Shown piece by piece: positions 20,095 through 62,424 of a stretch of DNA of 64,000 nt (positions are counted from its first letter, which is position 1; each line of letters begins with the position of its first letter). Under the pieces are notes generated by a model. The model ran no database searches, was not told where the DNA came from, and worked only from the letters and a program-made list of their open reading frames with translations. The position numbers were made by a program, and so were the translations under genes. Source of the stretch: Macrostomum lignano (lineage: Eukaryota); contig NIVC01000349.1 of assembly GCA_002269645.1 (NCBI GenBank), forward strand, positions 558,001 through 622,000, read 5' to 3'.

Positions 20095-22215
20095 GATTAC
20101 CCAAATCGGCGCCACAATGACACCAGAATCGGCGCCACAATGACACCCTAATCAGCGCCATAATAACAAACCAATCGGCATCACAATGACACCCAAATCG
20201 GCCCAGAATGACACCCAAATCGGCGCCACAATGACACCCAAATCGGCGCCACAATGACACCCAAATCGGTGCCACAATGACACCCAAATCGGCGCCACAA
20301 TGACACCCAAATCGGCGACACAATGACACCCTAATCGGCGCCACAATAACACACCAATCGGCATCGCAATGACACCCCAAATCGGCGCCCCAATAACACA
20401 CCAATCGGCATCACAATGACACCCAAATCGGCGCCACAATTACATCCCAAATCGGCGCCATAATGAAACCAGAATTGGCGCCACAATGACACCAGAATTG
20501 GCGCCACAATGACACCAGAATCGGCGCCACAATGACACCAGAATCGGTGCCACAATGACACCAGAATCGGCGCCACAATGACACCAGAATCGGCGCCACA
20601 ATGACACTTAACTTGGCGCTACAATAACACCCAAACCGGCGCCACAATAACACCGAACTCGGCGCCACGATGAAACCTGGATCGGCGCCACATGACGCCC
20701 GAATCAGCGGCACAGTGACACTCAAATTGGCGCCACAATGACACCCCAAATCGGCGCCACAATGACACCAGAATCGGCGCCACAATGACACCAGAATCGG
20801 CGCCACAATGACACCAGAATCGGCGCCACAATGACACCAGAATCGGCGCCACAATGACACCAGAAAATTTTCGCCACAATAACACCAGAATCGGCGCCAC
20901 AATGACACCAGAATCGGCGCCACAATGGCACCAAAATCGGCGTCACAATGACACCAGAATCGGCGCCACAATGGCACCAAAATCGGCGTCACAATGACAC
21001 CCAAATCGGCGCCACAATGACACCAGAATCGGCGCCACAATGACACCAGAATCGGCGCCACAATGACACCAAATCGGCGTCACAATGACACCAGAATCGG
21101 CGTCACAATGACACCAGAATCGGTGCCACAATGACACCAGAATCGGCGCCACAATGACACCTAAATCGGCGTCACAATGACACCAGAATCAGCGCCACAA
21201 TGACACCAGAATCGGCGCCACAATGACACCAGAATCGGCGCCACAATGACACCAGAATCGGCGTCACAATGAGACCAGAATCGGCGTCACAATGACACCA
21301 GAATCGGCGCCACAATGACACCAGAATCGGCGTCACAATGACACCAGAATCGGCGCCACAATGGCACCAGAATCGGCGCCACAATGACACCAGAATCGGC
21401 GTCACAATGACACCAGAATCAGCGCCACAATGACACCAGAATCGGCGTCACAATGACACCAGAATCGGCGCCACAATGGCACCAGAATCGGCGCCACAAT
21501 GACACCAGAATCGGCGCCACAATGACACCAAATCGGCGTCACAATGACACCAGAATCAGCGCCACAATGACACCAGAATCAGCGCCACAATGACACCAGA
21601 ATCGGCGCCACAATGACACCAAATCGGCGCCACAATGACACCAGAATCGGCGCCACAATGACACCAGAATCGGCGCCACAATGACACCAAATCGGCGCCA
21701 CAATGACACCAAATCGGCGCCACAATGACACCAGAATCGGCGCCACAATGACACCAGAATCGGCGTCACAATGACACCAGAATCGGCGCCACAATGACAC
21801 CAGAATCGGCGCCACAATGACACCTAAATCGGCGTCACAATGACACCAGAATCAGCGCCACAATGACACCAGAATCAGCGCCACAATGACACCAGAATCG
21901 GCGTCACAATGACACCAGAATCGGCGTCACAATGACACCAGAATCGGCGTCACAATGACACCAGAATCGGCGTCACAATGAGACCAGAATCGGCGCCACA
22001 ATGACACCAGAATCGGCGTCACAATGACACCAAATCGGCGCCACAATGACACCAAATAGGCGCCACAATGACACCAGAATCGGCGCCACAATGACACCAG
22101 AATCGGCGCCACAATGACACCAAATCGGCGCCACAATGACACCAAATCGGCGCCACAATGACACCAGAATCGGCGCCACAATGACACCAGAATCGGCGCC
22201 ACAATGACACCTAAA
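20095..22215. repeat. 23-bp minisatellite (AATCGGCGCCACAATGACACCAG), ~2.1 kb
   Basis: About 90 copies with 21/22-bp variants; CpG-rich. Confidence 0.94.
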
Positions 22216-25976: not shown

Positions 25977-28837
25977 ATGGCGCCTCAGCATCAATTGCTA
26001 TTTCTATCTGTTGCCCTACTGGCTCTGGTAACAATCTTTGGCAGCGTCAAACCAGTCTCCTCCTCCTCGACTGCAGAGCATCATTCTCAATGTCGAAGCC
26101 TGTGCGCCACCTGCCAGTCGTTAAAACCGGCAAGAATCAATCAGATATGCTCAGCGGGTCTGCTCACCGGCTGCAGCTGCCCCGAGAATGCGCTGAATTT
26201 GACGACAGCAAAGACGGCTCCTGACGAGGAGACAAAGATGAGAAATAACTGTCCCGGCACGAACAAAGATGCTATTGGATTCTGTACTTATGGTAAGCTT
26301 CCCTTGAGAATTAACTAACAATCTTCCTGGCCTTACACTACACTACACCAGTTTAAATAAGCCAGTTTTTTATTTAAAACGGCCCTTTTAGGGCCCGCTA
26401 GTGTGGCTTATACCGACTTATGAATAATTGAATATGAACCTTTGGTTTGGAATTGGATGTCAGGCGTCAGCATGAGTTATCGACAGTTACGAGTAACAAA
26501 GGAGACGCCCCTCTTTTCCGAAAAAATAGCATTGCTTCACATTTACACGAGTTACATACAATTTTTAAAACCTAAAACGGCCCTTTTAAGGGCCAACAGG
26601 TAACCTACGCCTTGCCTGTTTAAATAAACTGCCTCTCCTTTATCGCGTCTAGGCGTTTGACAGTGTAAGGCACATTTTTGCCAATATAAGACATCGCCTT
26701 TCGCCCCCCCCCGCAGGACAGCAAGTGGATTCCAGCGGGTGTCCAATCGGCATCTGCCGCCCTCCGCCCAGCTGCTCGGAATCTTCATCTATGGTGCTCT
26801 TCAAATCAGCCTGCCGCCTCTCCTGCCCGTCCGGATTCCAGACTGACTCAGCCGGGTGTCCCCTCTGTCGCTGCCGCTGTCCACCTCGAGATGAAGCTCG
26901 CCTTAGTTGCTCAAGGGCCTGCTCAGATTTGGGCCTGGCATCGGCAACAGCTAGGCTCGTCTCGCGGGGTTCTGCTGCAACTGGTAGCGATTCGAATACT
27001 GAAGGCTGTCCAGTGTGCGTCTGTCAGCAGGACCCGCCGGAGCCTTTGACCACGCCGCCTCCGCCGCCGCCGCCGTGTCTGCTCCGCTGTCCCAACAGTT
27101 GCGGATCTTACGGCTACGCTAGCGGCGAGTCTCGTGACGATCGGGGCTGCGTCAGGGACTGCTCATGCCGGTGCCCGCCTGCCAGACAGGTGAATGATGG
27201 ATGGATTGTCCGCCTGACTGTGCTTTCACAAGTTCCAGGGCGATTTGTACCTACTTTCTGGGCGATTTTTTCTCTTGTACTTTCAGTCAGGGCAATTTTT
27301 CTTGGGATGGGGAGAAGGGCGATTTTTCTAGGGATGGGGAGAAGGGCGATTTTTCTAGGGATGGGGAGAAGGGCGATTTTTTTGGGATGGGGAGAAGGGC
27401 GATTTTTTTGGGATGGGGGAGAAGGGCGATTTTTTTTAGGATGGGGGAGAAGGGCGATTTTTCTTGGGATGGGGGAGAAGGGCGATTTTTCTAGGGATGG
27501 GGGAGAAGGGCGATTTTTCTTGGGATGGGGGAGAAGGGTGATTTTTCTTGGGATGGGGGAGAAGGGCGATTTTTCTTGGGATGGGGGAGAAGGGCGATTT
27601 TTCTTGGGATGGGGAGAAGGGCGATTTTTTTGGGATGGGGGAGAAGGGCGATTTTTCTTGGGATGGGGGAGAAGGGCGATTTTTCTTGGGATGGGGGAGA
27701 AGGGCGATTTTTCTTGGGATGGGGGAGAAGGGCGATTTTTTTGGGATGGGGAGAAGGGCGATTTTTTTGGGATGGGGGAGAAGGGCGATTTTTCTTGGGA
27801 TGGGGGAGAAGGGCGATTTTTCTTTGTACTTTTAGGACAATTTTTTTGGGGGAAATGCGATTTCTCGTTAGGATTTTGGTTGGAAAAGCGATTTTTCTTG
27901 GTGAAAAAAGTGAGGATGATTTTTCCATATCTGATTAGTGATAAGGCGATTTTTCCTCACTTCCCACTTATTATTTCGCCTTGCTAATGATGAATTTATA
28001 ATCACGTTTGACTCGGAATAAAAGATTTCCATGCACGAAAATAATTGCAGCTGATTTATTTAAAGTGTAAGAATTTGGATTTGCAATTTTGCAATCATTG
28101 TTGTTCAGAGAGGTGTTAAAATCCCTCGCCCAAATCCTCAATTGAAGGCCTGCCCAGTTGGCGAGAGCTGCCTGCGCTGGGAGATTGACAGGTTCGGCTG
28201 CCAGCTGTGCTCAGCCTGCTCTGGCGGCTCCAGGTCTCACTCTGCAGCTCAGCAGCTGCCAGCCTCCCAGCCCTGCATCACTAAATCCAGCCTCCAGCAG
28301 CCCAACGCCATGGACCGCCTGTGCCCGTCCAATTGTCCCCGGCAGCAGTTCTCCATCAGCGAGGATTCGAACTCCGGCTGTCTGACCTGCTCATGCGCTG
28401 GCCAATCGCCAGCGAACAGGTGCTCGCAGACTGAGCCCAGCTGCTCAAACAGCTGCGGCCCGCACGGCCACCTGCGGGACTCGCTGGGCTGCCTGCTTCC
28501 CGGCTGCAATTGCAACTGCCCCGACCTCAACCAGTGCATCTCCAGCTGCGGTCAGGCTGGCAATTTCACTGTTGCTAAGGACGCCTACGGTTGCCATGCG
28601 TGTCACTGCTTGCAGCCAGCAGCAGCTAGCAGGTGTCCAGCCAAGCCGCGCTGCTCCCGAAGCTGCGGCCATCACGGATTTGAAATTGATGAGGCCACCG
28701 GGTGCCAGGTCGGCTGCGGATGCCGCTGCCCCAACCGGAGCTGCGGCTGCTTCTACGGCAGCAGGCAGGACGCCTTCGGCTGCGACACCTGCGAGTGCGT
28801 CACGGCCAGCGAGTACCTGCGGCTGCTGCCGTTCTGA
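25977..28837 (+). CDS. Secreted cysteine-rich protein with multiple antistasin-like repeats (~505 aa); exons 25977-26292, 26717-27189, 28109-28837
   Basis: Hydrophobic N-terminal signal-like segment (LLFLSVALLALVTIFG). Repeated C-x3-C-x2-G-x3-D-x2-GC-x2-C-x-C units (e.g. CRLSCPSGFQTDSAGCPLCRC, CFYGSRQDAFGCDTCEC). GT-AG introns are phase-compatible (1, 0). Confidence 0.8.
27290..27825. repeat. 27-28-bp G-rich minisatellite (GGGCGATTTTTCTTGGGATGGGGGAGAA) in intron 2 of the antistasin-like gene
   Basis: Tandem copies visible. Confidence 0.9.
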
Positions 28838-31870: not shown

Positions 31871-32729
31871 CAGTACCAGGAGTAGCACCTTTGTACGGCC
31901 ACTTTCCATTTCTCATAATCCCTAGCCAGCCGTTGAGCGGCCTCAGGCCTGGGCTGGAAACGTCGCTCAATGCTGTCGAACCTCTGGCCAATCTCAGCCT
32001 GGCTCCACAGTCCTGCAGCGATCGCCGTTAAAAATGCGCAACCGAGCGACGTTGCTTCGCGATTCGAACCGCGGACCACATCGCAATCGAGTAAATCGGC
32101 AATTCCCTGCATGATAAAATCGCTGGCGCTGACGCCACCGTTGCAACTAAAATTAGAGATTGGCGGGTTTGAAGAGCCATAGATAAATTCATCTAGCAAA
32201 ATACGCAACTAGCCTACTTACAGCACAGTAAGTAGACGGTTGAGGACTTTTTAACTAAAAATAAAAATTGCAACAAATAAAATGAATTTTTCTGTAAATC
32301 TCACCGCAACACAGCCGGTTTCTTGCCAGTCTCCAATCGGAAGGCTTCCGCAATGGCTTTAGTCTGAAATATGACCGCCTCAAGCAGGGCCCTGGCCATG
32401 TGCTCCCTGCTTGTACCAAGGTTAACTCCTAGGAAGCCAGCGCACGCGGCCGGATCAAAGACCGGCACAGCCGACCAGGTGAAACATGGCACAAAGAACA
32501 CTCCGCCAGAGTCTGCGAGTGCGATATTTAAAAAAAACTTGGCTAGATTGTGCACGATTTAGCTACTAAAAGTAGTTGATTGCTTTTACAGGCTTAAATT
32601 TAGAAATTCTTGAAGACACGAAGCTTCACAAGCTTGAATCTTACAGACAGAAAGACAGGCAGGCAGACAGACACACTGACAGACCTAAAGACAGACAGAC
32701 AAACAGACAGGCAGACACACAGACAGACC

Positions 32730-32764
<35 letters not shown>

Positions 32765-35700
32765 CGACAGACAGACAGACCGACAGACCGACAGACAGAC
32801 AGAAGCCACTTACCCGCCACTGTCAAAGCCGCAGACTCGGCCTCCGACACGCTGGGATAAAATCCCATAGCGCAGCCCCAATCCAGTGTGTTGCCTGTGT
32901 CTGCGTGACTACCTTCGATCATGTAGGTCGGTCCGCTCTGATCACCGTCAATGACCCAGCCAATCACGGGGTAGAGGCCTTTCATCGACGCATAAGGCTC
33001 TTTGCCGGTGTTCCAGTCCAGAAACGTGCCGGTGCCAAGGGTGACCTTCACCTGGTCGGGCTGGTGGCACAACTCGCCAAAGGTGGCGGCGCTCTGATCG
33101 CCAGAAATTGAGGTGATGTCCACCGGACCGCCGGGGAACAGATCGGTGTGGCCGAACTGGCCGGCTGTGGGCCAGACTTCCGGTAGCATGCGCAGAGGCA
33201 TGTGCAGCAGGGCGGACACCACGATGGGGCTCCACTCCAGCTGGATGGTGAGTGAGTGAGTGAGTAAATGAGTGATTGAATGATTGAGTGAGTGAGTGAG
33301 TAAATGAGTGATTATATGATTAAGTGAGTGAGTGAGTAAATGAGTGATTATATGATTAAGTGAGTGAGTGAGTAAATGAGTGATTATATGATTAAGCGAG
33401 TGAGTGAGTAAATGAGTGATTATATGATTAAGTGAGTGAGTGAGTAAATGAGTGATTATATGATTAAGTGGGTGAGTGAGTAAATGAGTGATTATATGAT
33501 TAAGTGAGTGAGTGAGTAAATGAGTGATTATATGATTAAGTGAGTGAGTGAGTAAATGAGTGATTATATGATTAAGTGAGTGAGTGAGTAAATGAGTGAT
33601 TATATGATTAAGTGAGTGAGTGAGTAAATGAGTGATTATATGATTAAGCGAGTGAGTGAGTAAATGAGTGATTATATGATTAAGTGAGTGAGTGAGTAAA
33701 TGAGTGATTATATGATTAAGTGGGTGAGTGAGTAAATGAGTGATTATATGATTAAGTGAGTGAGTGAGTAAATGAGTGATTATATGATTAAGTGAGTGAG
33801 TGAGTAAATGAGTGATTATATGATTAAGTGAGTGAGTGAGTAAATGAGTGATTATATGATTAAGTGAGTGAGTGAGTAAATGAGTGATTATATGATTAAG
33901 TGAGTGAGTGAGTAAATGAGTGATTATATGATTAAGTGAGTGAGTGAGTAAATGAGTGATTATATGATTAAGTGAGTGAGTGAGTAAATGAGTGATTATA
34001 TGATTAAGTGAGTGAGTGAGTAAATGAGTGATTATATGATTAAGTGAGTGAGTGAGTAAATGAGTGATTATATGATTAAGTGAGTGAGTGAGTAAATGAG
34101 TGATTATATGATTAAGTGAGTGAGTGAGTAAATGAGTGATTATATGATTAAGTGAGTGAGTGAGTAAATGAGTGATTATATGATTAAGTGAGTGAGTGAG
34201 TAAATGAGTGATTATATGATTAAGCGAGTGAGTGAGTAAATGAGTGATTATATGATTAAGTGGGTGAGTGAGTAAATGAGTGATTATATGATTAAGTGAG
34301 TGAGTGAGTAAATGAGTGATTATATGATTAAGTGAGTGAGTGAGTAAATGAGTGATTATATGATTAAGTGAGTGAGTGAGTAAATGAGTGATTATATGAT
34401 TAAGTGAGTGAGTGAGTAAATGAGTGATTATATGATTAAGCGAGTGAGTGAGTAAATGAGTGATTATATGATTAAGTGAGTGAGTGAGTAAATGAGTGAT
34501 TATATGATTAAGTGGGTGAGTGAGTAAATGAGTGATTATATGATTAAGTGAGTGAGTGAGTAAATGAGTGATTATATGATTAAGTGAGTGAGTGAGTAAA
34601 TGAGTGATTATATGATTAAGTGAGTGAGTGAGTAAATGAGTGATTATATGATTAAGTGAGTGAGTGAGTAAATGAGTGATTATATGATTAAGTGAGTGAG
34701 TGAGTAAATGAGTGATTATATGATTAAGTGAGTGAGTGAGTAAATGAGTGATTATATGATTAAGTGAGTGAGTGAGTAAATGAGTGATTATATGATTAAG
34801 TGAGTGAGTGAGTAAATGAGTGATTATATGATTAAGTGAGTGAGTGAGTAAATGAGTGATTATATGATTAAGTGAGTGAGTGAGTAAATGAGTGATTATA
34901 TGATTAAGTGAGTGAGTGAGTAAATGAGTGATTATATGATTAAGTGAGTGAGTGAGTAAATGAGTGATTATATGATTAAGTGGGTGAGTGAGTAAATGAG
35001 TGATTATATGATTAAGTGAGTGAGTGAGTAAATGAGTGATTATATGATTAAGCGAGTGAGTGAGTAAATGAGTGATTATATGATTAAGTGAGTGAGTGAG
35101 TAAATGAGTGATTATATGATTAAGTGAGTGAGTGAGTAAATGAGTGATTATATGATTAAGTGAGTGAGTGAGTAAATGAGTGATTATATGATTAAGTGAG
35201 TGAGTGAGTAAATGAGTGATTATATGATTAAGTGAGTGAGTGAGTAAATGAGTGACTGACAGAATTCTCACCCCAAACGGATCGTACATTCCGGTAGTGC
35301 TGGCGCAAGAATAATCGGTAGCAAACGTTCTGCCCTCGGTCAAACGCCACAACAGCCAGGACTCGTTGCAGCCAACGCAAATCTCGCCGCGCCTGGCCCT
35401 CTCTAACAGGGCCGGGTTCTCGGCAAAGAGCTTCACCAATTGAATAACCGGCATACCGATTTTGAACTGCAGCACAGACGCAGCCAAGAATTTCGCTCGG
35501 CCAGTAAGCTTGTACAGAGCCCAGCACGCCGCCCTGAATGCCCGCATTCTCAGAGATCGATTCCAGATTGCGCAATCTTTACCAGCCCGCCGGTCCTGCC
35601 AGGAGATGATGGGCATCAGCGGCTTGCCACTGTCACGTTCCCACGCTGTGACTGAGTTGCGCATCACTGTGATGCCCAGGCCGCGGATCCGGCTGGGCGC

Positions 35701-36348
35701 CACCTCTGCGGGGGGTGGGTGCGGCGGTATGAAGTGGGTTGGGTGATGCGGTATGGAGTGGGGTGAGTGCGGCGGTACGGAGTGGGGTGGGTGTAGCGGT
35801 ATGGAGTGGGGTGGGTGTAGTGGTATGGAGTGGGTGGGTGCTGCAGTATGGAGTGGGGTGGGTGCTGCAGTATAGAGTGGGTGGGTGTAGCGGTATGGAG
35901 TGGGGTGGGTGTAGTGGTATGGAGTGGGGTGGGTGCAGCAGTATGCAGTGAGGTTCTATGGTGCAGTGGGTGGTACCGGTGGTTGCAGTGCAAACTAGAG
36001 TAATTGCTATTGATTATTGAACACTGCAATATGCAATATGTAAGTAATGATACACGAGGTCACTCTTACCAGCAAAAGCTTCCTCTAATATTCCTTTACA
36101 AACTTTCCACAGATCCTCTGGGTCATATTCAGTTTGCAATGGCTCTGGATGCAAGGCAGTTACCTATTTATGTGGATATTAAAATTATTCTGTTGTAGAC
36201 TCTGAAGTACTTGATTAATAAATCAATTATAGTTAACACCTGCCTTGGCACTTTTGATAAGTATAATTGTGGCCTCTTCATTATAGATGTGAACCCGAGC
36301 ACTTGAAGAACCAACATCAAGAACAGCAATATATTTTGCATCTGTCAT
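31870..36348 (-). CDS. GK5: Glycerol kinase 5-like FGGY carbohydrate kinase (~514 aa); exons 36244-36348, 36070-36163, 35272-35705, 32814-33240, 32305-32512, 31870-32146
   Basis: Motifs YIAVLDVGSSS, EYDPEDLW, ISWQDRRA, TDYSCASTTGMYDP, GDQSAATFG, KVTLGTGTFLDWNTG, GGVFFVP, RALLEA and CNGGVSASDFIMQ are present. Exon lengths sum to 1545 nt (515 codons). The LRMRAF and TLGTGTFLDINTG-like segments fit GK5 rather than canonical GK. Confidence 0.92.
32640..32800. repeat. (ACAG)n microsatellite in a GK5 intron
   Basis: Direct observation. Confidence 0.9.
33245..35260. repeat. 36-bp minisatellite (AGTGAGTGAGTGAGTAAATGAGTGATTATATGATTA), ~56 near-identical copies filling a GK5 intron
   Basis: Period 36. 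Variant bases recur 252 bp apart (33397/33649, 33471/33723), indicating a 7-unit duplication. Confidence 0.96.
35710..35960. repeat. ~24-bp G-rich minisatellite (GGTATGGAGTGGGGTGGGTGTAGC) in a GK5 intron
   Basis: Tandem copies visible. Confidence 0.8.
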
Positions 36349-48973: not shown

Positions 48974-51082
48974 TCAGGACTCTTCTTCAGTGTCCGAGTC
49001 GTCATCATTTCTCCTGCACCTCTGCACCAGAATATAGATGAACTCAAGCAGCTCAAATGTGCTCACGACGCTGATGCCGAGCCAGAGTCCCAGAGTTCCT
49101 CCGACCTGCGGAATATCGAGGAAAAATTGAAAACTGGCACAGCAGCTCAGTGTTGCTAAGGGAACCAGGGTGGTGGGATTTGCTGGAGCCGATTTTAACT
49201 GGGCATGCAAGTGGAGCTGAGGGTGAGACAGTGGGGCTAAGGCGGGTCTGACCACCAGCCTTAAACACTGGAATATTGCAATAACCGGAATGCAGCTCTC
49301 ACCTCCGACAGGGCCTCAGTCCAGTGGTATCTGTACATCTCTTCGTAAACGTCCGCGGCAGGACTCTGCAAGCTGATGCTGACTGCTGCCAGGTTCTCCG
49401 CCAATTCGCTATGACGAACGCAAGGCGTTCCGAAATTTATATAATCTTCGTATGCCTGTAAGTTCTTTAATTAATAAACATTACGGCAGGTTCTGTCGTG
49501 AGATAGACGAAAATTAACTAGAATTTCCTGTCTGGATCTGTGATTTTTCTTATAGATATGATGCACCTTGCCATCCTCGGGCAGGAACTCGACTCCATGT
49601 GTGACTTGTGGCACCATCAGGTTCTCCCAGATCTCTTGAATGGCGCTGAACGGGGGCCACCCGCGGCTCTGCTGCCAAGGCCGTTGCTGAGTGAATTGGC
49701 ACCACATCCGGTGTTGGAACTCCTTCGCCAGCTCCTCGCTTTTCCTCTGTGCGTGCTCAAACCAGTGATCATGGCAGTCGATTCTCTTCAGCACAGCATC
49801 CGATGGGGTGATCCACTCCTGTGGTGGAGCGAAGTAGCAAAGGTCGCTCGTATTCACCGAGAACGGGAGCAGGTGCGAGTAGCAGCCGCAGTTGCTGTGC
49901 AGGATGCTCTGCTGTGCCTCGACTACGAAATCGGAGACGGACTTTGAGTAGGCCTTGGTGACCACGTTCAGCGAGGCGTTGGAGAAGTGCCTGACATAGT
50001 TGATGGTTTCGATTGGAGGCTCGGAGCAACTGCGGCTCGGCGTCGACTTGAGTCGGTTGTGGACCGGCCTGAGTTTGATGGAGGTGCTGGTGGCTGAGGC
50101 CACGTCCACGAACTCGGTCTCTGCGGTTTGGCATGGGTTTGGCATTGGCTGTGAGACTGGTTTGGCATGGGTTGTGCGTGGGCTATGAGACTATGTGACC
50201 TACGAGCTATGAAAACAATTTAATGCGACCTCAAAATTACGTACGACTCATCGGGTAGCTTTTCGCGTCGTGAATGAAAAGGCGCAATCCAGTAGACTGA
50301 GGCTGGTTGTTCTGCAGTAGCCGATTGGCAGATCTGCTTCTGAATAATATGCGGGACATGCAGGATGGAGGGTTATTTTTTTCCTGTTCGGTCTGAAAAA
50401 TATACCTAGAATAGTAGGAACTGTCTGTGTAGCCATCGGTGAAGAGCACCATGTCGAGCTCGGCTCCCCTGCCCCCAGAACCGCTGGACGACTGCCCCGG
50501 GTCCGGGTGGAACGTGTAGCAGCTCCAGAACCGGCTGGTCTGGACAAGCGAGAAGTTCTTGTGACTGCAGGGCTCGTTGTTGTAGCGGCAGCTCAGCAGC
50601 ATGGTCTTATCGAGGTGGGAGATGTCTCTGGTGTCGCCCGACACCCACATCACGTCCAGGACCTTCTTGCACACCTTCTCAATTCGGTTTTGGTAGCTTT
50701 CATCCGATTCCTGCGGGCGCTTCTTGGTGTCCTCTTGGAACCAGTTGTCGAAGTTGCCCCAGAAGGCTTTCAAGTAGTTGTAATATTGACTATTCACGGA
50801 TAAGCTAAGAGACATGGGCTTGAAATTGCAGATTGTGACGTCGGGAAACTGGGCTCGTTCGCTCCTCAGCTTCAGCCGCGACTCAACGGAGCGATCGGTG
50901 AATTTCTGCACCAATTTTGCCAGGTGGACGGTGCAGCCGATCAGGGCAGCTACGAACAGAAGCAGCCAGAAGAGCCGTCGAGCTGTGCCTCTGGACAGGA
51001 ATATGTGCAGCAAGCCGTGGGTTCTCGTGATGCCAGCCACCTCCTGGGCGGCACCGGTCACCGTGCGGAGTCGGGCTCGCAT
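48974..51082 (-). CDS. DEG/ENaC/ASIC-family (FaNaC-like) cation channel subunit (~558 aa); exons 50245-51082, 49567-50120, 49303-49455, 48974-49105
   Basis: Pre-TM1 THG motif, TM1 (LFWLLLFVAALIGCTVHL), FPDVTICN, CRYNNEPC, GLRLFIHD..YP, Cys-rich CGC, WPP, ENLAAVSI..YEE and TM2 ALSE|VGGTLGLWLGISVVSTFELLEF with a GxS filter. Exons sum to 1677 nt; the 49566 donor is weak. Confidence 0.88.
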
Positions 51083-51709
51083 TTTCCTCTTCAGTTTTTA
51101 AAGCAGCCTGCAGAACGGAATGCTGTAGATTTCTTAAGGCAGTTGCTAAGGAGTTATTTGCTAGTACTCAGAGGTTATCGAGCGCTCAAGCCAAACTCTT
51201 CCGCTCGGCAGTCCTGTTCCGCAGTGCGAGCTGCATCCTATCGGTGCCCTAGACTAAAGCATTCCCGCAACTGGGTGGCTTATTTGCTACTTGGCTTACA
51301 TGGATTTTGCTACGCAATTTAGGCGCAGCTAAAACAGTACTGTATAGACTGTAGAGTATGTAATATTCTAGCCAATACATGCACATAATTTTCTAGCAAA
51401 TCTGGTCCCTAGATCCCGGTCAGATCGCCAGTGCTTTAAGGTTAAAGGTTAGGGGTCTGGTGAAGTCGCCAAAATGAGTACCTGTGGTGCCAAAATGAGT
51501 GTGCTAACAACACCGACTCGCAAAATAATTTACAAGTAGAATTCTTGTCTTTGTCCCCCCCCCCCCTTCGACCATAAAAGCCAGGGCAACGCAACTGCAA
51601 CGTAAAAAAAAATTAAACGTCAGAGTAAAATTACATTAAGAGTTTAGGCGTCAATTTTGAAAAGCTTGTAGGTTAATTCACTTTACTGCGATGACTCTTT
51701 AGTCAATGA

Positions 51710-52280
51710 ATGTTCACGAGGGAGCTGCCAGTCACTGAAAGTTCACGAGGGAGCTGCCAGTCACTGAATGTTCACGAGGGAGCTGCCAGTCACTGAATGT
51801 TCACGAGGGAGCTGCCAGTCACTGAATGTTCACGAGGGAGCTGCCAGTCACTGAATGTTCACGAGGGAGCTGCCAGTCACTGAATGTTCACGAGGGAGCT
51901 GCCAGTCACTGAATGTTCACGAGGGAGCTGTCAGGCTGTCAGTCACTGAATGCTCATGAGGGAGCTGTCAGGCTGTCAGTCACTGAATGCTCATGAGGGA
52001 GCTGTCAGGCTGTCAGTCACTGAATGCTCATGAGGGAGCTGTCAGGCTGTCGGTCACTGAATGCTCATGAGGGAGCTGTCAGGCTGTTAGTCACTAAATG
52101 CTCATGAGGGAGCTGTCAGGCTGTCAGTCACTGAATGTTCATGAGGGAGCTGTCAGGCTGTCAGTCACTGAATGCTCATGAGGGAGCTGTCAGGCTGTCA
52201 GTCACTGAATGCTCATGAGGGAGCTGTCAGGCTGTCAGTCACTGAATGTTCATGAGGGAGCTGTCAGGCTTTCAGTCACT
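51710..52280. repeat. Composite minisatellite: 29-bp unit (51710-51930) switching to a 37-bp unit
   Basis: TGAATGTTCACGAGGGAGCTGCCAGTCAC becomes TGAATGCTCATGAGGGAGCTGTCAGGCTGTCAGTCAC by an 8-bp internal duplication. Confidence 0.9.
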
Positions 52281-52545: not shown

Positions 52546-54707
52546 TCATTGCAGTTTCATTCTATTGAGCTTGGCGTGAGTCCAGCTGTCTAACTGCTCT
52601 ACTGCTGTTTCCATGGCAACCAGACCCCCCAAGTCGGCCCCGTCTCGCAGCAACCTCGCCCTCGCCCACAGCCTCCGCTCCTCATCTTTCCTGCTGCGGT
52701 GAGCGCCGCTGTCGCTGCCGCTGCCGTTCGAAACTCGCCACCGCTTCTGCCTGACCCAGCCGATCTTCTCCTCGTCCTGCGTCTCCATGGCGACGCGTCT
52801 CTCTTTCTCGATCATCTCCATCTGCTGCAGGCTGAGCTCCACGTGCTCGCGGCAGTCGCTGTAGTGAGCCAGAGTGAGCAGCTCCTCCAAGTCCGGGTCT
52901 CCAAGCAGCTGCTCAATCCAATGATCGAATGCGATTGCAGGTGCGCGATTGCGGAGCAGCTCAGCTTGGAGACTCCAGCTCAGGCAGCGGAAGTTCACGT
53001 ACAGGTGAGAGGAGAGAGGCTGCGACAGTCTGGCTGTGAACAGAGTCTGCGTGAACTCGGGAAGGAATGGGAAGCGAGGCGGAGAGTCGCAGGGGAGGCA
53101 GAACCTCCACGCCCAGTCTGAGTCTTCTGGCAGTTTTATCTCTTTTTCTCCACTGCTTATACTCTCATCTCGAATATCCTGTGGCTTCAACCCTGACCCA
53201 ACTTGATGTCTCTGCAGCTCCATGGCGAATCTCTCAGCCTCCTCAGATTCTTCGAACTTCAAATGCGCCATGGCGGTCATGCACAGGGCGGCGCACTTGC
53301 ACCACTGCAGCTCATGCAGGAGACTGAGCTGCCTCATCAGGGTGTCTCTGTCGCTCGATTCCGACTGCAGCTCGCTCACACACTGGTGCACCACACTGTA
53401 CACGTCTGCAAACTTGCAAGTTTCCAGATAGTTACTTCTTTCCCTGATCTCCGTGACAGCAGGCGGCGCTGTCAGAGGCAGCAGAGTGAACGGGTGAAAG
53501 TAGAACTTCTCTGACTGCAGAGGTCTCACGAGTCTCCTCAGCTGCTCGACCACTCCGCCGATGTCGCTTCTCAGCTCACAAAGTCGGTCTCGAACCCTCG
53601 CCTTCGTGTTGTCAAAGTCGCCGCCGATTCCAGCGTTCTTGAAGTAGAGCGGAGCGTCGGGCATGAAGAAGTGCGGCATGCACTCATCGGGCGAAGTGTT
53701 TGAGTTGATGAAGCTCAGCATCATGTCGAGAGACTCCTTGAGCAGAGCGATCAGATATTGGGGTTGCCAAGCCTCATTCCGCCAACTATATGTGCCATGC
53801 TTTTCCAGCATGAAGAAAAGCATAGTCTTTGCATGATAGGTTTTGAGTCCAGGTGTGTCCAGAGTGAGCGGCAAGTGTCTCTTGAAGATGAACTTGATGA
53901 GTGTGAACAGCTGGCCCTGTACTGTGCTCATCTGTCTCATGATTTCTTTCTCTTGGAAGCTGAAGCTCACTCTGAGCTCGTTGGTCGAGCTCGGTCTGGT
54001 CGCTCTGACAAGGTGAACGTTCGTATCCTGATAGCTGAGAAGCCTCTCAACTCTGCTTTGACAGAAACTGCTGCAGCACTGGATCGCCTGGCAGATGTCT
54101 TGAGCAGGCCTCACACCGCATGCAGCCGCTGTCACGGTTGGTTGATTTCCTGAATTTTTTGTTTCAAATGCTTCACTTGATAATCTACTGCAATGAAATT
54201 AGCTGTAAAATTTTACATTTCTCTTCATTCTTGTCATCACAATGAACTACCAAAACATTGTCCGGAATTTATTAAACCCAGCCTCACTCACCTGCTCCCA
54301 CAGACACCTGTGCGTGGCCCTCCTTGACTTGCAGCCGAGTGGCATATCTGCAGGAGTCCTTCCATCTTTCGCAGCCACCTTCTAGGTGGAACTCTTGCCC
54401 AGCAACCAGCACAGTCCAGTCAATGTCCGAGTCTGCAGCTGTCCTGCCGTTCACTTGCACCAGACTGTTGGCCCAGCCCTCTGCGTAGCTGCCCGTTATC
54501 TGCCTGCCATCCTGTGTGAGGACTCGAGCGACTCCTTCAAGCCAGTCAGCCAGTCTCTGCTGACACTCCGCTCTCTCCCTGGTGAATCCCGCCTCGCTAA
54601 GCAGTCGATGAAGCTCTTCGCTCAGGCGCCTGTCTTGCTGGGAGTCGTCTGAGAGCTTGGAATGCTCTTCGCTGAGTTGCCTCTCATTCCGAGTGTCGTC
54701 TTTGACC
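52546..54707 (-). CDS. Mab-21/cGAS-like nucleotidyltransferase domain (cGLR); exons 54292-54707 and 52546-54149
   Basis: The unannotated exon 54292-54707 reads ..ITGSYAEGWANSLVQVNGRTAADSDIDWTVLV.. (GS..DxD). It splices in phase 1 (GTGAGT donor at 54291, TTCAG acceptor at 54150) to ..AQDICQAIQCC..NVHLVRA..ELRVSFSFQEKEIM..LIKFIFK..LKTYHAKTMLFFMLE..ECMPHFF, the canonical Mab-21 core. Confidence 0.88.
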
Positions 54708-57700
54708 CTGACAAATACATATAAAGAAGATTACGCAATTCTCAATTGGCAGTCAACTACGAGTATTAACTCTAACGTATAAAGTTTCTAAGGTTTCCAT
54801 AAAGTTTCTGCTACAATTGGCAAATGAGTAAGACTGATAAGATGCTAAGTGTAGTGAGTCGCTATTTAGTTAGGCGCCGCACTAGTCAGCTGGTTTCCTC
54901 GCCCTCGCCCCAGGCTTCTGTCTGCCGCTGGGCAGTTGTCTGTCCCTTCTCGCCTGTCCTCTGGCCTGTCCCTTGCCCGTTTGCCTGTCTGTCTGTTTGT
55001 CCTCGTTTGCCCCCTTTTGTTTCGTGTTCTCGTTTTGCAGTGCCCAGACAGCTTGGTCTGGCCTGCCTCTGTTTCGTCTCTGTTAGGCACCTCCAAATCT
55101 GGAGTGCCGTTCTGTTTTCCGATCCCAAGGTCACGAGTGCCTTCACTTGTGGGCCCTTTTCCCCTTGTCGTGTGAGCCAGTCACATGACAAGCCTCTTCT
55201 GTCTTATTAGTCCAAAGTACAATGATTTCCTCATTGTGCACTGGGCTCGTGTTTATGGGGACATCACGTGCGTCAGGACCCCCTGTCTCCTCTTCTGAGG
55301 CGGAACCCGCTCGCTTGTTGCTAAAAATAGCAACAGCGTCATCTATGACGCGCATCGATTGCACCATTTTGTGATATGGTGCAATCGATGCTCCCTATAA
55401 ATGCAGTCCCTCTCATGGCTTGGCTCAGACAAGCGCGTCCCCTTTTCTGCCTCACCGTTTCACCTGTCTCTCAGTTTCAAGCCAAGCTCGTGTGCCAAGT
55501 TTGAGCCTAAGTTTGAACTCCAAGACTCCCGACTTTGCGAGTGCCTGCTTCTAATTGTTCCTGCTATCTATTAGCGGGCCGGCTCAGATCGCCCGAAGCT
55601 AGCACCATCGCTCTAGCCCCGAACTAGCCCGGCAGGGACTGCTGATTGTGGACGCATCTGCTCGAGAACTGCTAGTTATTGCTAGTTATTTGCTTCTACG
55701 AGCTCAGCACCTCACCGAAGGCTGCGACTCTACGAAGCTGGTGGCAGCACTACCTACGCTACGAGAACTAGTTTCTAAGAAACCGCCAGCTAGACGCCTC
55801 CGCCAGGAGCTAGAAGATCTGCCAGCCCTTCCGAGACAGCCCGAGGAAGCCAGCAGACACGACATTGGTGGCAGCGGTCTAGTCAACAACCACAGGCAAG
55901 AGCACTTACTTCATTGGTGGCAGCGGTGGGATTCTAAGACCTACCATGCAGGCCATCTCCAGACCAACTAAAGTGCAAATACTTCAGAAGCAACTGCCTA
56001 TTTTCATTTTAGGACTTTTAGCTCCGATAATAACATTATAATCCTCACACTGAATTCTGTTCAAGAAGTCGGAGCACCTGCCGCTGCTCGAATCGCTGTG
56101 CCACCTGCGCACACGTCAGACCCCGACCGTCTCGATGACTCGCATCCGCTCCTCTGTCCATCAGAGCCTTGGCTGCTCGCACGTGACCGGCTTCGCACGC
56201 TCGTGACAGAGCAGTCCGACCCTGACTGTCTTTAGCACGCACTGACGCACCGAGATCGATGAGTTTCTCAATGAGCTCGTGATGACCTTCATCAGCTGCC
56301 AGCATGAGAGCAGTGGCTCCAGTGCTGTCTGGCAGATCGACATGCTGTGTGCTGACTCGCTCATCATTGATCAGTGTGACAGCAAGAGCCACGTGTCTTT
56401 GAGAGATGGAGAGACGAAGCAGCTGTGTGATGAGAGCTGGCTGCATTCGAGAGAGGGTGTCGGTGAGAACAGAGTTCCTGCCTTCGATGGCCATTGCTGC
56501 AGTGAAGCTGAGGATGGTGCTGGATTGGAAGAGCCAGTCGGGCTCGAGGCCGAGGGATGCAACGACATCTTCATGAAGACGAGAGCAAGCCGCGACTGCA
56601 TATTGGAAACGGAGATTCGCTTTGGGATCCCGACTTGAGATACACGAGATGAAGAACTTCGCGACTTCTAGCTGACCCTCTTCAGCAGCATATTTCGCTG
56701 CCCCAATGCAGCACTGATCTCTGTTTGTTTGGTCAGCGACTGACTGAACCAGAAACTTCACAATTTCCCACTGACCATTGCTTGCAGCAGATTTCACTGC
56801 CTCAATGCAGCACTGATCTCTGTTTGTTTGGTCAGCGACTGTCTGCACCAGAACCTTCACAATTTCCCACTGACCATTGCTTGCAGCAGATTTCACTGCC
56901 TCAATGCAGCACTGATCTCTGTTTGTTTGGTCAGCGACTGTCTGCACCAGAACCTTCACAATTTCCCACTGACCCTCGCTTGCAGCAGATCCTGCTGCTT
57001 CAATGCAGCACTGATCTCTGTTTGTTTGATTAGCGACTGACTGAACCAGAAACTTTACCACTTCCCACCGACCCTTTCTTGCAGCAGATTTCGCTGCATC
57101 AGTGCAGCACTGATCTCTTTTTGTTTCGTCAGCGACTGTCTGCATCAGAAATTTCATAACACCGAAGTGACCTTTGCTTGAAGCAGATTTTGCTGCCTCA
57201 ATGCAGCAATGGTCTCTGCTTGTTTGGTCAACGACTGTCTGCACCAGAAACTTCAGTACTTCCCACTGACCCTCACTTGCAGCAGATACTGCTGCCTCAA
57301 TGCAGCACTGATCTCTGTTTGTTTGGTCAGCGACTGTCTGAACCAGAAACTTTACCACCTCCAACTGACCATTGACTGCAGCAGATTTCGCTGCCTCCTT
57401 GCAACCGTGATCTCTCAATTTTTGGTCAGCGACTGTATGCACCAGGACCTTCACCTCCTTCAAAACACCGTTGATTGCTGCAGATTTTGCCGCTTCAATG
57501 CAGCACTGGTCTCTCAGGCTTTGGTCAGAAATGGTCTGGACCAGAAACTTCACCACTTTCCACTGACTGTCTCGTGCAGCAGGCCTCACTGCCTCCATGC
57601 AGCACCGATCTCTCACATTTCTGTCTGTCACAGTCTGCACAAGAAATTTCACCACTTCCCACTGATGCTCATCTGCAGCAATCAGCGCTGCCTGTAAGCA

Positions 57701-59053
57701 GCAGCTATCTTTGAAATTTAAGTCGCATATCAAATTAACAGCATAGTCAAGAATCTTTAAATTTCCAAATCTTGCTGCCGACTTAGCAGCCTTTGTGCAG
57801 CATTTGACCCTCATGGTTTGATCGCATGCCACCTTCAGCAGGAACTCCACAGCCTCCCACTGGCGTTCTGTTGCAGCGGCATTCACAGCTTGTACGTAGC
57901 AAGTCTCTTTTAGCTCCGGGTGAGTAATTTCCCGAGACAATAGTTTCAACAATTCCAGATGCCCGAACTTGGCAGCGGACTTTGCCCCTTCAGAACAGCA
58001 CTGATCGCGCAGACGTTCATCAGAAATCTGCTCGAGCAGCAAAATTATTATCTTAGAATCGCCACATTCTGCAACTCCGTTTACGAAAACCGCGCAGCAA
58101 TGAAATTTCAACGTAGAATCAACCACGATCTGGTTAAAAAGCTTTAGAACTTCATAATTTCCTACTGTTGAAGCGGCAGAGACTGCTTTCTTACAGGAAA
58201 TCTTCTTTAGATCGTCTTTCATTATACAGTGCAAAAACAGATTCAGGGTGCTCCACTCGCATTTTACTGCGACATCTTCTATGATTTCAAAGAAGCACTG
58301 ATCTCTTGCAAAGCCGTCTGTAACGCTGGTTACTAAAAGTTTCACGACTTCCCATTCGGTTTTCTTAGCAGCAAATTTTGCCACCTCCAGGCAGCACCGA
58401 TCCCTGTCCGGGATGTCAGAGATCTGTTGAATCAGAAACTTCATCATCTCTATCAGGTTCATACTCGGCGTGTCTCTGAACTCAACCATGCAGAAGTCTG
58501 CAAACATGCTCTCCTCGGTCTGCAGGTTCACGACTGTCAGCGAAGTCTCATCCGATCGCCAGTGCTGCAGAGTGGACGTCATCAAGAGTTGAACAATTTC
58601 CCACTGGTGATATGTGGCCGCAGATTTCGCTGTCTCAATGCAGAATTCGTCAATAAAGTCTCTATGTACTTTTAGATAGAGATAGCGCACGACTGACACC
58701 CGACCAAATTGTGCAGCACATTTAGCAGCCTCTAAGCATCGTCCTGCGTCCGTTAGTTGGGATCCGTCTGATTGTATAATAGAGTCGAGCAGTTTCAAAC
58801 GACCAATCTTAGCGACAGTCAGCACTGATTCTTTATCAAACACTTGGCAAGCAAAAAATTCAATATTCTTCATTCGAGTGAACGCTAAAGCTGACGTCAA
58901 TCGATTTTTGACAGAGCTTTTGTTAAACACCACATAAATAACAAACTGAGTGGCGGGATGCCTTCTTCCAGAAGACTTTTGTATTTGACCAGAATTCCAA
59001 TTTTTAGTCCAGCGTCTGCGACCTAAGACGTAGGCCCTGGTTAGATCTGGCAT
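52546..59053 (-). CDS. Predicted ankyrin-repeat plus cGAS-like receptor fusion gene (~1674 aa); exons 56049-59053, 54292-54707, 52546-54149
   Basis: The ankyrin ORF stop lies inside a donor-like GT|GTGAGG at 56048. A phase-2 join to the TTTGTCAG|G acceptor at 54708 gives ..EQNSV|VKDD.. in frame. Exons total 5025 nt = 1675 codons. Confidence 0.65.
54850..55933 (+). mobile_element. LTR-like segment plus tRNA-Leu primer-binding site, inserted in the ANK-cGLR intron
   Basis: Begins TGTAGTGAG at 54850, has TATAAA at 55396, and ends ..TTCA-T-TGGTGGCAGCGGTGGGAT. Positions 55915-55932 are the complement of the eukaryotic tRNA-Leu 3' end including CCA. A second 13-nt PBS copy lies at 55866-55878. CTAAG flanks both sides (54845-54849, 55934-55938). 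Confidence 0.55.
56045..59053 (-). CDS. Single 3-kb exon encoding ~20 divergent 33-aa ankyrin-like repeats plus 2-3 canonical ankyrin repeats
   Basis: Repeat consensus DQCCIEAAKSAAxxGQWEVVKFLVQTVADQTNR (33 aa, 99 bp). Canonical GATALMLAADEGHHELIEKLIDLGASVRAKD and GRTALSRACEAGHVRAAKALMDRGAD lie at the C-terminal end. Confidence 0.88.
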   Translation of the reverse strand: MPDLTRAYVLGRRRWTKNWNSGQIQKSSGRRHPATQFVIYVVFNKSSVKNRLTSALAFTRMKNIEFFACQVFDKESVLTVAKIGRLKLLDSIIQSDGSQLTDAGRCLEAAKCAAQFGRVSVVRYLYLKVHRDFIDEFCIETAKSAATYHQWEIVQLLMTSTLQHWRSDETSLTVVNLQTEESMFADFCMVEFRDTPSMNLIEMMKFLIQQISDIPDRDRCCLEVAKFAAKKTEWEVVKLLVTSVTDGFARDQCFFEIIEDVAVKCEWSTLNLFLHCIMKDDLKKISCKKAVSAASTVGNYEVLKLFNQIVVDSTLKFHCCAVFVNGVAECGDSKIIILLLEQISDERLRDQCCSEGAKSAAKFGHLELLKLLSREITHPELKETCYVQAVNAAATERQWEAVEFLLKVACDQTMRVKCCTKAAKSAARFGNLKILDYAVNLICDLNFKDSCCLQAALIAADEHQWEVVKFLVQTVTDRNVRDRCCMEAVRPAARDSQWKVVKFLVQTISDQSLRDQCCIEAAKSAAINGVLKEVKVLVHTVADQKLRDHGCKEAAKSAAVNGQLEVVKFLVQTVADQTNRDQCCIEAAVSAASEGQWEVLKFLVQTVVDQTSRDHCCIEAAKSASSKGHFGVMKFLMQTVADETKRDQCCTDAAKSAARKGRWEVVKFLVQSVANQTNRDQCCIEAAGSAASEGQWEIVKVLVQTVADQTNRDQCCIEAVKSAASNGQWEIVKVLVQTVADQTNRDQCCIEAVKSAASNGQWEIVKFLVQSVADQTNRDQCCIGAAKYAAEEGQLEVAKFFISCISSRDPKANLRFQYAVAACSRLHEDVVASLGLEPDWLFQSSTILSFTAAMAIEGRNSVLTDTLSRMQPALITQLLRLSISQRHVALAVTLINDERVSTQHVDLPDSTGATALMLAADEGHHELIEKLIDLGASVRAKDSQGRTALSRACEAGHVRAAKALMDRGADASHRDGRGLTCAQVAQRFEQRQVLRLLEQNSV

Positions 59054-59720: not shown

Positions 59721-60193
59721 ACAGGGGGGATTTCACAAACTCGAAATTTCACAACGTCGAAAGCACCTTCTTTCACAAGATCGAAATTTCACAAGGTCGA
59801 AATCTCATAACACCGAAAACTCAAATAGCAGCCACTTTCACAGGGTCGAAACTTCATAAGGTCGAAATTTCACAACGTAGAAAACTTTAGCATAGTTCTC
59901 GTTATACGCGCGAAAGTTTTCGACTTTGTGAAATTTCGAGCTTATGAAGTTTCGACCTTGTGAAAGTGGCAGCTATTTAATTTTTCGATGTTTTGAAATT
60001 TCGATCTTGTGAAATTTCGACCTTATAAAGTCTCTTACTGAGTTTTCAATGTAAAATTTAGACCTTGTGAAGTTTCGACTTTGTGAAAGTGGTTGATATT
60101 TAAGTTTTCGACTTTGTGAAATTTCGACCTTATGAAGTCTCTTGCTAAAGTTTTCGGTGTTATGAAGTTTCGACCTTGTGAAAGCACCCCTGT
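59721..60193. mobile_element. Foldback MITE-like element with repeated TTTCACAA/TTGTGAAA subterminal motifs
   Basis: Ends ACAGGGG..TTTCACAA and TTGTGAAAGCACCCCTGT. The internal motifs switch orientation at the centre. No clear TSD. Confidence 0.6.
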
Positions 60194-60789: not shown

Positions 60790-62424
60790 TGCATCAATGC
60801 TCGGTGGATCAAGTACAAGCTAAATGATGACGCTAACGCACTGTCCAGAGCGCCGGTGGAGGAGCCTAAAGCGAGCGATCAGATCCTGGAATTCGACAAC
60901 AGGGAGCAGGCTATCAGCTCAGTGCACGCTCTGTTGCAGTCGGAGAAAGAAATCTCCGAAGCAGCAAACCGTGATTCAGAATATCGGCTTCTCAAGAAGA
61001 TAATCCTAGATGGTTTTCCAAACTGCAAGGCGAACCTCCAAGAGAATATCCGTGCGTACTGGCACCTACGGCAACAACTCTGCGTCGAAGACGACCTCAT
61101 CCTGGCTGGAAGACGGCTACTGATCCCTAGGAAGCTAAGGAGAAGCGTCCTCGAAAATCTCCTGAAGATGCAGCAGGGGATTCCACAAAATGAAGGAGCA
61201 AGCAAGGCAAAGCATTTTCTGGCCTGGCCTGATCAACGACATCGAGCAGATCGCTAAGACGTGCAAACCATGCCAAGAAAATCTTCCTAGCCTGGCGAAG
61301 GAACCCATGGTCGTTCCAGAGCCACCGGAACGAGTCTTCCAAGAGATCTACGCGGATCTATTTGAATATGCAGGGAAGAATTTCCTTGTCATCGTGGATG
61401 GCCTATCCGGTTGGGCAGCTCTCAATTACCTTGGCGATGACACACCCGCAACCAAAGTCGTCAGTGCTATCCGACAGAGATTCGTCGAGAAATCGGTCCC
61501 CGACATTTTCTGGTCAGACGCCGGTCCACAATTCAACGCAAAAAATTTCAAGGATTTCCTACTAGCACGCTGGAACGTCGAACACCGAGTATCGTCTCCA
61601 CATTATCCACAGAGCAACGAACGCGCCGAAGCTGGGGTGAAAGAAATGAAGAAGATCGTCAGAGGGTCTTGGAACCATCAGACTGGCACGCTGGACTGGG
61701 AGAAACTGTCAAAAGGCCTCTTAGTCTATCTCAACACTCCAAGATACGACGGCAAGTCCCCAGCTGAAACAGTGTTCGGCCACCCAATTCGTGACACGAT
61801 TCCGGCACACAGAAGAGCGTTCGCACCTGAATGGCAAAAATCTGCAGCTGAGATCGAGGAGAAGCAGGCTAGAGTCAAGGCGACTACGGAGAAATACTAC
61901 AACCAAGACGCTCAGCCCCTGCCGGACATCAAAGTGCATCACAGAGTGGTGGTTCAGGACTGTCACACCGGATGATGGGACAAGTACGGCGTGATCGTGG
62001 AAGCCGGACGGAACCGAGATTTCATGATTCGACTGGCGAGTGGGAGATGTCTACGGCGGAACCGCAAGTTCATCAGGAAGCGGATCCCAGTCAGCCCAAT
62101 CGAGGCCAAGAAGACCGCCGCGGACGGTGCTACCGAGCAAGGCATGCCTGGAGCATCCGGAGGGTCGGCCGAGCCAAGGAGGACCCGATTCGGCCGAGAG
62201 ACTAAGAAACCTCAGATGCTACAGGTTGACCTATAGGAGGAAAAACTATGATAGTTGAACTTTGAAAGGGGAGATGGTGTATCCCCAGCCTTAGTTGTGT
62301 GGCTTTGGTCATAGACAATTATACGCGTGACTGTAACCGTATGCAAATATACGTCGTACTGAAGACGGCCACCGCGACTGAGCGGATTATTAAGCTAAGC
62401 CGATTATCTATTAGAGATACAACA
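60790..62424 (+). mobile_element. 5'-truncated, frameshifted Ty3/Gypsy LTR retrotransposon (RNase H end, integrase, PPT, 3' LTR)
   Basis: ARWIK..NDDANALSRAP; zinc-finger region ARQSIFWPGL..CKPC; integrase D(ADLF)-D(WSDAGPQF)-E(SNERAE); frameshift near 61180; polypurine tract GAAAGGGGAGATGG at 62264-62277. Confidence 0.88.
62278..62424 (+). repeat. Short 3' LTR of the Gypsy element (TGTATC..GATACAACA)
   Basis: TG directly after the PPT, CA end, and terminal inverted TGTATC/GATACA. Confidence 0.65.

Follow-up and report, generated by a model that had tools for sequence, protein, structure and literature searches.

The fold and motif criteria applied here are those by which Li et al. 2023 defined cGAS-like receptors (cGLRs), and their survey admitted the protein family described below (PMC9980059). 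Some cGLRs bear tetratricopeptide repeat (TPR) or ankyrin (ANK) modules, and most platyhelminths were reported to possess only Mab21-like proteins and no other cGLRs (PMC9980059). The gene analyzed here is located on the minus strand of a 64,000-nucleotide stretch of Macrostomum lignano DNA (contig NIVC01000349.1, positions 558,001 to 622,000 of the forward strand; assembly GCA_002269645.1), which is referred to as the window and whose first letter is position 1 of the coordinates used throughout. The best explanation for the region from 52546 to 59053 is a single three-exon Macrostomum ANK-cGLR gene, whose product would be a synthase of nucleotide second messengers that is gated by a ligand, the ANK array serving as sensor or regulator. 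On balance we hold this to be probable.

Gene structure

A program-made list of open reading frames (ORFs) contains two separate entries for this region:

56045..59053, minus strand, ORF of 1002 aa
52546..54135, minus strand, ORF of 529 aa

According to a preliminary description of the locus, these ORFs are bridged by an unlisted 416-nt exon with junction phases 2 and 1, giving a protein of about 1674 aa. This in-frame join was reproduced. Joining 59053-56049, 54707-54292 and 54149-52546 on the minus strand yields 1674 codons, the sole stop being the terminal one, and the junctions lie in phase 2 and then in phase 1. The resulting gene model consists of the following elements:

56049..59053, minus strand, exon 1 (3005 nt, ending in phase 2), with the N-terminal region, the ankyrin array, the linker and the canonical ANK repeats
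54708..56048, minus strand, intron 1 (1341 nt)
54292..54707, minus strand, exon 2 (416 nt, entering in phase 2 and leaving in phase 1), with the N-terminal cGLR helix and the GS and D-I-D motifs
54150..54291, minus strand, intron 2 (142 nt), with the donor GCAG/GTGAGTGAGGCTGGGTT, the same as in paralogue locus L001 (a slash marks the splice site)
52546..54149, minus strand, exon 3 (1604 nt including the stop), with the third Asp, RVSFSFQEK, the Mab-21_C region and the C-terminal domain

The apparent stop of the 1002-aa ORF is a TGA within the donor consensus CAGT/GTGAGG. Thus, this ORF ends because the splice donor itself carries a TGA. Exon 2 is delimited by TATGTATTTGTCAG/G on the acceptor side and GCAG/GTGAGTGAGG on the donor side, a T-rich tract ending in TTTGTCAG precedes it, and GTGAGTGAGG comes after it. 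It is open in one frame and contains no Met codon; the chance of 138 open codons, calculated as (61/64)^138, is ~0.001. All three exons are matched by M. lignano paralogues at the DNA level. Exon 1 is 82-83% identical to the ANK exons of the paralogue loci L001 and L002, exon 2 is 89% identical to the matching exon from 54667 onward, and exon 3 shares 88-89% with the last exons. No alignment of the flanking introns with the paralogue loci was obtained by blastn.

The same exon plan is found at L001 (P0043) and L002 (P0001), where an ANK exon ending in phase 2 is followed by a GS/DxD exon of ~360 nt with an identical donor and by a large last exon. Paralogues of this architecture had been proposed as a check on the fusion, and transcript-derived, fused M. 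lignano paralogues were indeed found: their models represent RNA-seq-assembled transcripts that were cut at observed spliced leader (SL) and poly(A) sites (PMC5730564). ANK N-termini are present in most family members. In comparison with L001, the ratio of nonsynonymous to synonymous divergence (dN/dS) is 0.32 for the array, 0.59 for linker plus ANK, 0.38 for the cGLR core and 0.58 for the C-terminal domain. Sequence comparison thus strongly supports a single fused ANK-cGLR gene made up of the three exons, as had been inferred earlier.

The exact junction between exons 1 and 2 is not unique, though the fusion is common to all alternatives. Enumeration of GT/AG pairs in the scanned range gave 33 that keep the frame, and every one yields a fusion; 56049/54707 is the only pair with a consensus GTGAG donor and a pyrimidine-rich acceptor (CAG). 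The cis-splice consensus of M. lignano is GT[G/A]AG for donors and CAG for acceptors (PMC8629364), and the junctions in the window agree with it. The acceptor of P0043 reads CATTCCAG/GCTCTCAG and its counterpart in the window is CATTCCAAGCTCTCAG. Here, the paralogue acceptor TTCCAG/G (L001 8960-8990) has become TTCCAAG, so that the AG lies one base off and is out of phase. The acceptor of this copy is a strong one, located 51 nt upstream of the paralogue site; the 17 extra codons stay open, and the 54-nt micro-exon of P0043 is lacking. The 51-nt extension of exon 2 (within window 54655-54707, KDDTRNERQLSEEH) resembles a duplicate of the adjoining SDDSQQDRRLSEELH, and its codons look like a second copy of the KDD..QLSEE motif.

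The start codon is uncertain. The first ~60 codons (58873-59053, MPDLTRAYVLGRRRW...) are not coding-like, are AT-richer and have no counterpart in the paralogues. Translation may begin at Met1 (59053) or at Met61 (58873, MKNIEFFACQ...), for a predicted protein length of ~1,614-1,674 aa, or a 5' exon may be missing.

Domain composition

The preliminary description had proposed the domain order ANK array, canonical ANK, Mab-21 nucleotidyltransferase (NTase) and helical C-terminus. Analyses with Pfam, Foldseek and AlphaFold2 (AF2) agree with this order:

56627..58756, minus strand, divergent ankyrin array of ~21 units of 33 aa, consensus RDQCCIEAAKSAAsxGQWEVVKFLVQTVADQTN
56339..56626, minus strand, linker of 96 aa that joins the divergent array to the canonical ANK repeats, conserved in paralogues, no Pfam family
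56049..56338, minus strand, canonical ankyrin repeats, 2-3 units (...GATALMLAADEGHHELIEKLIDLGASV...), up to the donor CAGT/GTGAGG
54493-54488, minus strand, GS motif (ITGSYAEGW), G73-S74 in fragment numbering
54427-54419, minus strand, D-I-D motif, D95 and D97 in fragment numbering
54099-54097, minus strand, third catalytic Asp (RPAQD), D157 in fragment numbering
53865-53647, minus strand, Mab-21_C region (Pfam)
52549..53532, minus strand, family-specific C-terminal domain of 328 aa, mostly helical with a small sheet

The active-site signature of the NTase is complete. It reads G73-S74, D95-I-D97, 59 residues and D157, which corresponds to the pattern G[S/G] plus [E/D]h[E/D]-X50-90-[E/D] of Li et al. 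2023. The GS, D.D and D residues are retained in 31 of the 34 informative family members, which span ~30-85% identity, and the G and the S occur in all 34. The fold was modelled on the paralogue P0003, which is 82% identical to the Mab-21 half of the window protein. Its AF2 model (pLDDT 78, pTM 0.80) was compared with the PDB by Foldseek, a check that the preliminary description had suggested with respect to cGAS. The best matches were cGAS, MAB21L1 and MB21D2, with E ~2e-6, a probability of 1.0 and TM scores of 0.45-0.55 normalised to the target. The modelling thus indicates that the middle domain is a cGAS/Mab-21 bilobal nucleotidyltransferase fold. Alignment with human cGAS by hhalign places QPTVT...RPAQDICQAI on SPAVT...ISVDITLAL, and hence D157 on cGAS D319, and also pairs LRVSFSFQEKEIM with WRLSFSHIEKEIL. 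The isoelectric point (pI) of the core is 6.7, compared with 9.07 for the catalytic domain of cGAS.

A different assignment, in which LRVSFSF forms the third catalytic strand with an Asp to Ser exchange and the enzyme is inactive, was ruled out by hhalign and the criteria of Li et al. It was dropped because the third acid is D157 of RPAQD, whereas LRVSFSFQEK aligns with WRLSFSHIEK of cGAS.

The repeats of the N-terminal half had been described as ~20 divergent ANK units, and this count holds closely. A self-built hidden Markov model (HMM) detected 21 in-register 33-aa units, spanning residues ~100 to 809, and the Pfam ankyrin models score above threshold. The divergent array alone reached 133.9 bits with Ank_2 (cutoff 27.3), 104.3 with Ank_4 and 84.1 with Ank. 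Because the array scores this highly on its own, its units are, as far as sequence can tell, true ankyrin repeats, representing a variant with CCIE in place of TPLH. Positions D2, C5, A8, A12 and K22 of the unit are fixed, and variability peaks at positions 6, 10, 14, 15, 32 and 33. The last ~10 units also form a tandem array at the DNA level (56685-57665; period 99 nt, 9.9 copies according to TRF) that carries a 297-nt higher-order unit. Arrays of paralogues comprise 3 to more than 15 units. The canonical block matches Ank with 53 bits, Ank_4 with 56.8 and Ank_2 with 53.7.

The C-terminal ~330 aa are predicted to be a confidently folded domain (AF2 model with pLDDT 83 and pTM 0.78) that has no recognised relative in PDB or Pfam. 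Foldseek against the PDB returned nothing significant, the best hits being generic alpha-solenoids and TPR proteins at E=0.33, and no Pfam family matched. This domain includes the highly conserved block DWAWRFCLPCDSPPRFPFLPEFTQTLFTARLSQP..HLYVNFRCLSWSLQAELL, and the best conserved block of the whole family lies in it. Its role is probably in oligomerisation or in coupling the protein to downstream partners.

The Macrostomum family

Searches with the Mab-21 half retrieved 42 proteins from the word-indexed and 149 cluster representatives from the exhaustive search. All named word-indexed matches, and all strong exhaustive matches that were looked up, belong to Macrostomum lignano. The family is expanded, with ~98 representatives of 50%-identity clusters at E<1e-10. 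P0001-P0006 share 84-86% identity with the Mab-21 half over 88-97% of its length. With these as best matches, the copy in the window is unannotated at near-identity in the M. lignano protein sets searched. P0053, with 98% identity over 100 aa, was considered as the annotation of this locus and rejected, as it represents another paralogue merged with a kinase. No second family copy was found within the 64-kb window.

Novelty of the repeat type and the lineage, as anticipated in the preliminary description, is not borne out, since Tables S2 and S3 of Li et al. 2023 already list the ANK-fused M. lignano family. Table S2 includes Ank_2 domains over the divergent repeats of PAA68676.1 (PMC9980059). 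This protein is identical with P0001 and BOX15_Mlig016402g1, the top-ranked match, which is 84% identical to the Mab-21 half in the window. Rows 89-93 of Table S3 comprise five M. lignano proteins that were expressed without their ANK parts (PMC9980059); row 93 is PAA68676.1 and row 92 is a member of the same subfamily. Apart from these supplementary tables, no literature on Macrostomum STING or cGLR biology was found. The locus is therefore a new, unusually long-arrayed copy in a catalogued, functionally uncharacterised family.

The paralogues PAA68676.1, PAA93208.1 and PAA62074.1 (P0043) share with this copy the domain order, the CC-type ankyrin unit, a Mab-21 half of 84-86% identity, the C-terminal domain, identical GS...DSDIDW...RPAQD motifs, the three-part exon plan and a 3' minisatellite. 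They differ in array length, with ~21 units in this copy and 3-9 in the three models. Synonymous divergence from P0043 is very uneven along the gene, with dS values of 0.88 (ANK array), 0.075 (linker plus canonical ANK), 0.28 (cGLR core) and 0.13 (C-terminal domain). Such a pattern points to gene conversion or recombination among the paralogues.

Some family models show further domains. P0048 (PAA93319.1, M. lignano, 2111 aa) is annotated with ANK, Mab-21, ANK and a caspase domain (Peptidase_C14, 96 bits) and has a degenerate NTase site (GS/D.N/T). Either a genuine sensor-protease fusion or the merging of two neighbouring genes could account for it. The models P0007, P0030 and P0053 run from a family member into a second Mab-21 domain or a protein kinase, which suggests tandem gene clusters and merged predictions.

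Proposed function and alternative explanations

The preliminary description had called the product a candidate sensor-coupled nucleotide synthase, which is a fair reading given the complete catalytic motif. In the proposed mechanism, the protein would rest in an inactive state until a ligand binds to the variable face of the ANK solenoid or this face is freed from an autoinhibitory contact. Engagement of the ligand would reposition the GS activation loop, upon which the NTase would make a cyclic di- or oligonucleotide from NTPs that is read by a downstream receptor. The array may grow and shrink via unequal crossing-over of the 99-nt units and could thereby provide diverse recognition surfaces. 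The inactive resting state and the sensor-synthase mode are inferred by analogy with characterised cGLRs. A protein or another non-nucleic-acid ligand is plausible because of the ANK scaffold, because of the pI of the core and because the paralogues were not flagged as active in a screen with dsDNA and poly I:C (PMC9980059). Li et al. 2023 tied a pI >8.5 to nucleic-acid sensing and acidic cGLRs to other ligands (PMC9980059).

Several points weigh against the proposed synthase gene. The model of this copy is drawn from genomic sequence alone, the exact protein and the separate ORFs are absent from a collection of 15 billion proteins, and the altered paralogue acceptor entails a different 5' boundary of exon 2. 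The Pfam analysis recommended in the preliminary description was positive for the Ank models, marginally so for Mab-21_C, which barely passes (25.2 bits at a cutoff of 24.1), and negative for the NTase-core model PF03281, which gave no match at E<=1. Culbertson & Levin defined the superfamily by clade and by this Pfam domain; the ANK-cGLR family is too divergent for PF03281, yet conforms to the fold and motif criteria. Active sites are degenerate in P0029, P0047 and P0048. The Note column that flags 15 active enzymes in Li et al. 2023 is empty for all five M. lignano proteins (PMC9980059), which fits an unknown ligand but would also fit a lack of catalysis. The loss of cGAS and STING in flatworms was reported by Wu et al. 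2014 for Schistosoma only (PMC4117786); no Macrostomum receptor was found in the literature, and no database search for STING was made.

The locus could also give two products, an ANK-only protein terminated by the TGA of 56047-56045 and an independent Mab-21 protein from exons 2 and 3, which would have its own promoter, a small upstream exon or an SL and form an operon-like pair with the first. This is very improbable. An in-frame stop does exist in the ANK ORF, and the database model P0003 (659 aa) has no ANK repeats, but the stop sits within the donor consensus and the paralogue models built from transcripts are fused. Exon 2 lacks an ATG, and in its frame a Met does not occur until after all catalytic residues. 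The spliced leader of M. lignano has an ATG at its end (PMC8629364), and at the 54707 acceptor it would read ATG GGT CAA AGA CGA CAC TCG GAA TGA, which is out of frame and stops after 8 codons. Thus, neither exon 2 nor the SL gives an in-frame start. Intron 1 was searched for a paralogue-like exon and for a hidden micro-exon like that of P0043, but tblastn of the 42 family proteins returned only noise at E>0.2 and blastn against the paralogue loci returned nothing. The distance of 1.34 kb between the two parts also exceeds the 1-kb operon threshold applied in M. lignano (PMC8629364). Quite improbable, too, is a silent or decaying paralogue, that is a copy, one of more than 100 in the family, that looks intact but is not expressed and has no function of its own. 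Such a copy would agree with the missing near-identical annotation in either M. lignano protein set, the altered acceptor, the non-coding-like 5' end of the ORF and a retroelement integrase fragment 2 kb upstream. It is contradicted by the frame of 1674 codons, which is uninterrupted over three exons, by intact splice signals and catalytic residues, and by a dN/dS below 1 in every segment.

The main rival of the synthase accepts the fusion as real and assigns the Mab-21 domain a non-enzymatic role as scaffold or adaptor, acting via contacts of the ANK and C-terminal domains as in shrimp Mab21, MAB21L1 and MiD49/51. We consider it unlikely. The close paralogues were not among the enzymes flagged active by Li et al. 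(PMC9980059). Shrimp Mab21 proteins neither bind nucleic acid nor make cGAMP and signal by binding IKK-epsilon, a kinase that they activate directly (PMC12928593), some flatworms at least are reported to have no STING (PMC4117786), the NTase-core model is unmatched, and it is the C-terminal domain, not the NTase, that contains the best conserved block of the family. However, MAB21L1-type proteins have lost most catalytic residues (PMC4117786), whereas the family-wide retention of GS, D-x-D and the third Asp would be hard to explain without selection on catalysis. Most cGLRs in the screen of Li et al. likewise appeared inactive, which its authors attribute to unknown ligands (PMC9980059). A bolder version of the synthase reading, in which the Macrostomum genes with ANK, cGLR and C-terminal domain form an NLR-like, fast-diversifying repertoire of protein-ligand sensors, with variable ANK arrays gating the synthase and signalling via the fold-orphan C-terminal domain or a non-STING receptor, is rather improbable. 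If it were true, it would place cGLR signalling in a phylum for which the loss of cGAS-STING has otherwise been described.

For annotation, two seemingly separate ORFs represent one gene, and other copies of the family are probably caught in the same trap. The family is among the clearest cases of a cGAS-like enzyme hard-wired to a large variable protein-recognition scaffold and, for this reason, is suited to a search for non-nucleic-acid cGLR ligands, which were left as a question by Li et al. 2023 (PMC9980059). As RNA interference and transgenesis exist in M. lignano, the ligand question is experimentally tractable. No new principle emerges from the locus itself, as the family, the ANK fusion and the lineage had all been recorded before.

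Neighbouring sequences

Minisatellites are located directly 3' of the gene:

51701..52280, no strand assigned, minisatellites, 29-nt unit x8 and 37-nt unit x10 (TRF)

They share 92-98% identity with L001 17523-18111 and L002 27164-27308, and as they also occur behind the paralogues, they are part of the duplicated gene unit. The next gene downstream on the same strand (49474-51082, minus strand) encodes an amiloride-sensitive sodium channel of the ASC/ENaC family, with a Pfam ASC match of 107 bits on the exon 50240-51082. About 2 kb upstream of the ANK-cGLR gene, a retroelement integrase fragment (Integrase_H2C2 and rve) is located at 61190-61972 (plus strand), and tandem repeats with units of 16 and 65 nt occupy 59914-60138. 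A 420-aa ORF at 26725-27984 (plus strand) contains an antistasin-family cysteine-rich motif (35.9 bits). Extreme strand skew occurs at 8001-10000 (GC -0.78), 20001-22000 (AT +0.49) and 34001-36000 (GC +0.58), the last of which overlaps a 1020-aa ORF (32641-35703, minus strand) that has no convincing Pfam match. The skewed regions are probably low-complexity or satellite DNA and not genes.

Comparison with known systems

The protein shares with human and mouse cGAS, Drosophila cGLR1 and MB21D2 the fold and the motif G[S/G] plus [E/D]h[E/D]-X59-[E/D]. Further common features with cGAS-type proteins are the W/LR-h-SFS-x-x-EK element, the YH-x-K-T helix and a C-terminal lobe resembling a helix-hairpin-helix (HhH-like). 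It differs from cGAS and animal cGLRs by an identity of only 12-18%, a longer loop between GS and DxD and a core that is near-neutral instead of basic. In addition, it possesses an ANK N-terminus of ~1000 aa and a C-terminal domain of ~330 aa, and its function is predicted from sequence.

A cGLR core combined with an interaction module is likewise present in coral and mollusc cGLRs fused to ankyrin, TPR or death domains (for example in Stylophora pistillata; Li et al. 2023 Fig. 1C/4C), for whose repeat modules a role in ligand interaction was proposed (PMC9980059). These proteins belong to different clades and contain ordinary ANK repeats in short arrays, whereas the repeat variant and the C-terminal domain of the Macrostomum family are peculiar to it, and its expansion is far larger. 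LvMab21-1, LvMab21-2 and LvMab21-3 of shrimp are, like this family, invertebrate Mab-21/cGLR relatives; in shrimp they have an immune role and do not respond to dsDNA or dsRNA (PMC12928593). They bind IKK-epsilon and lack an ANK array (PMC12928593), whereas in Macrostomum the catalytic triad is conserved family-wide.

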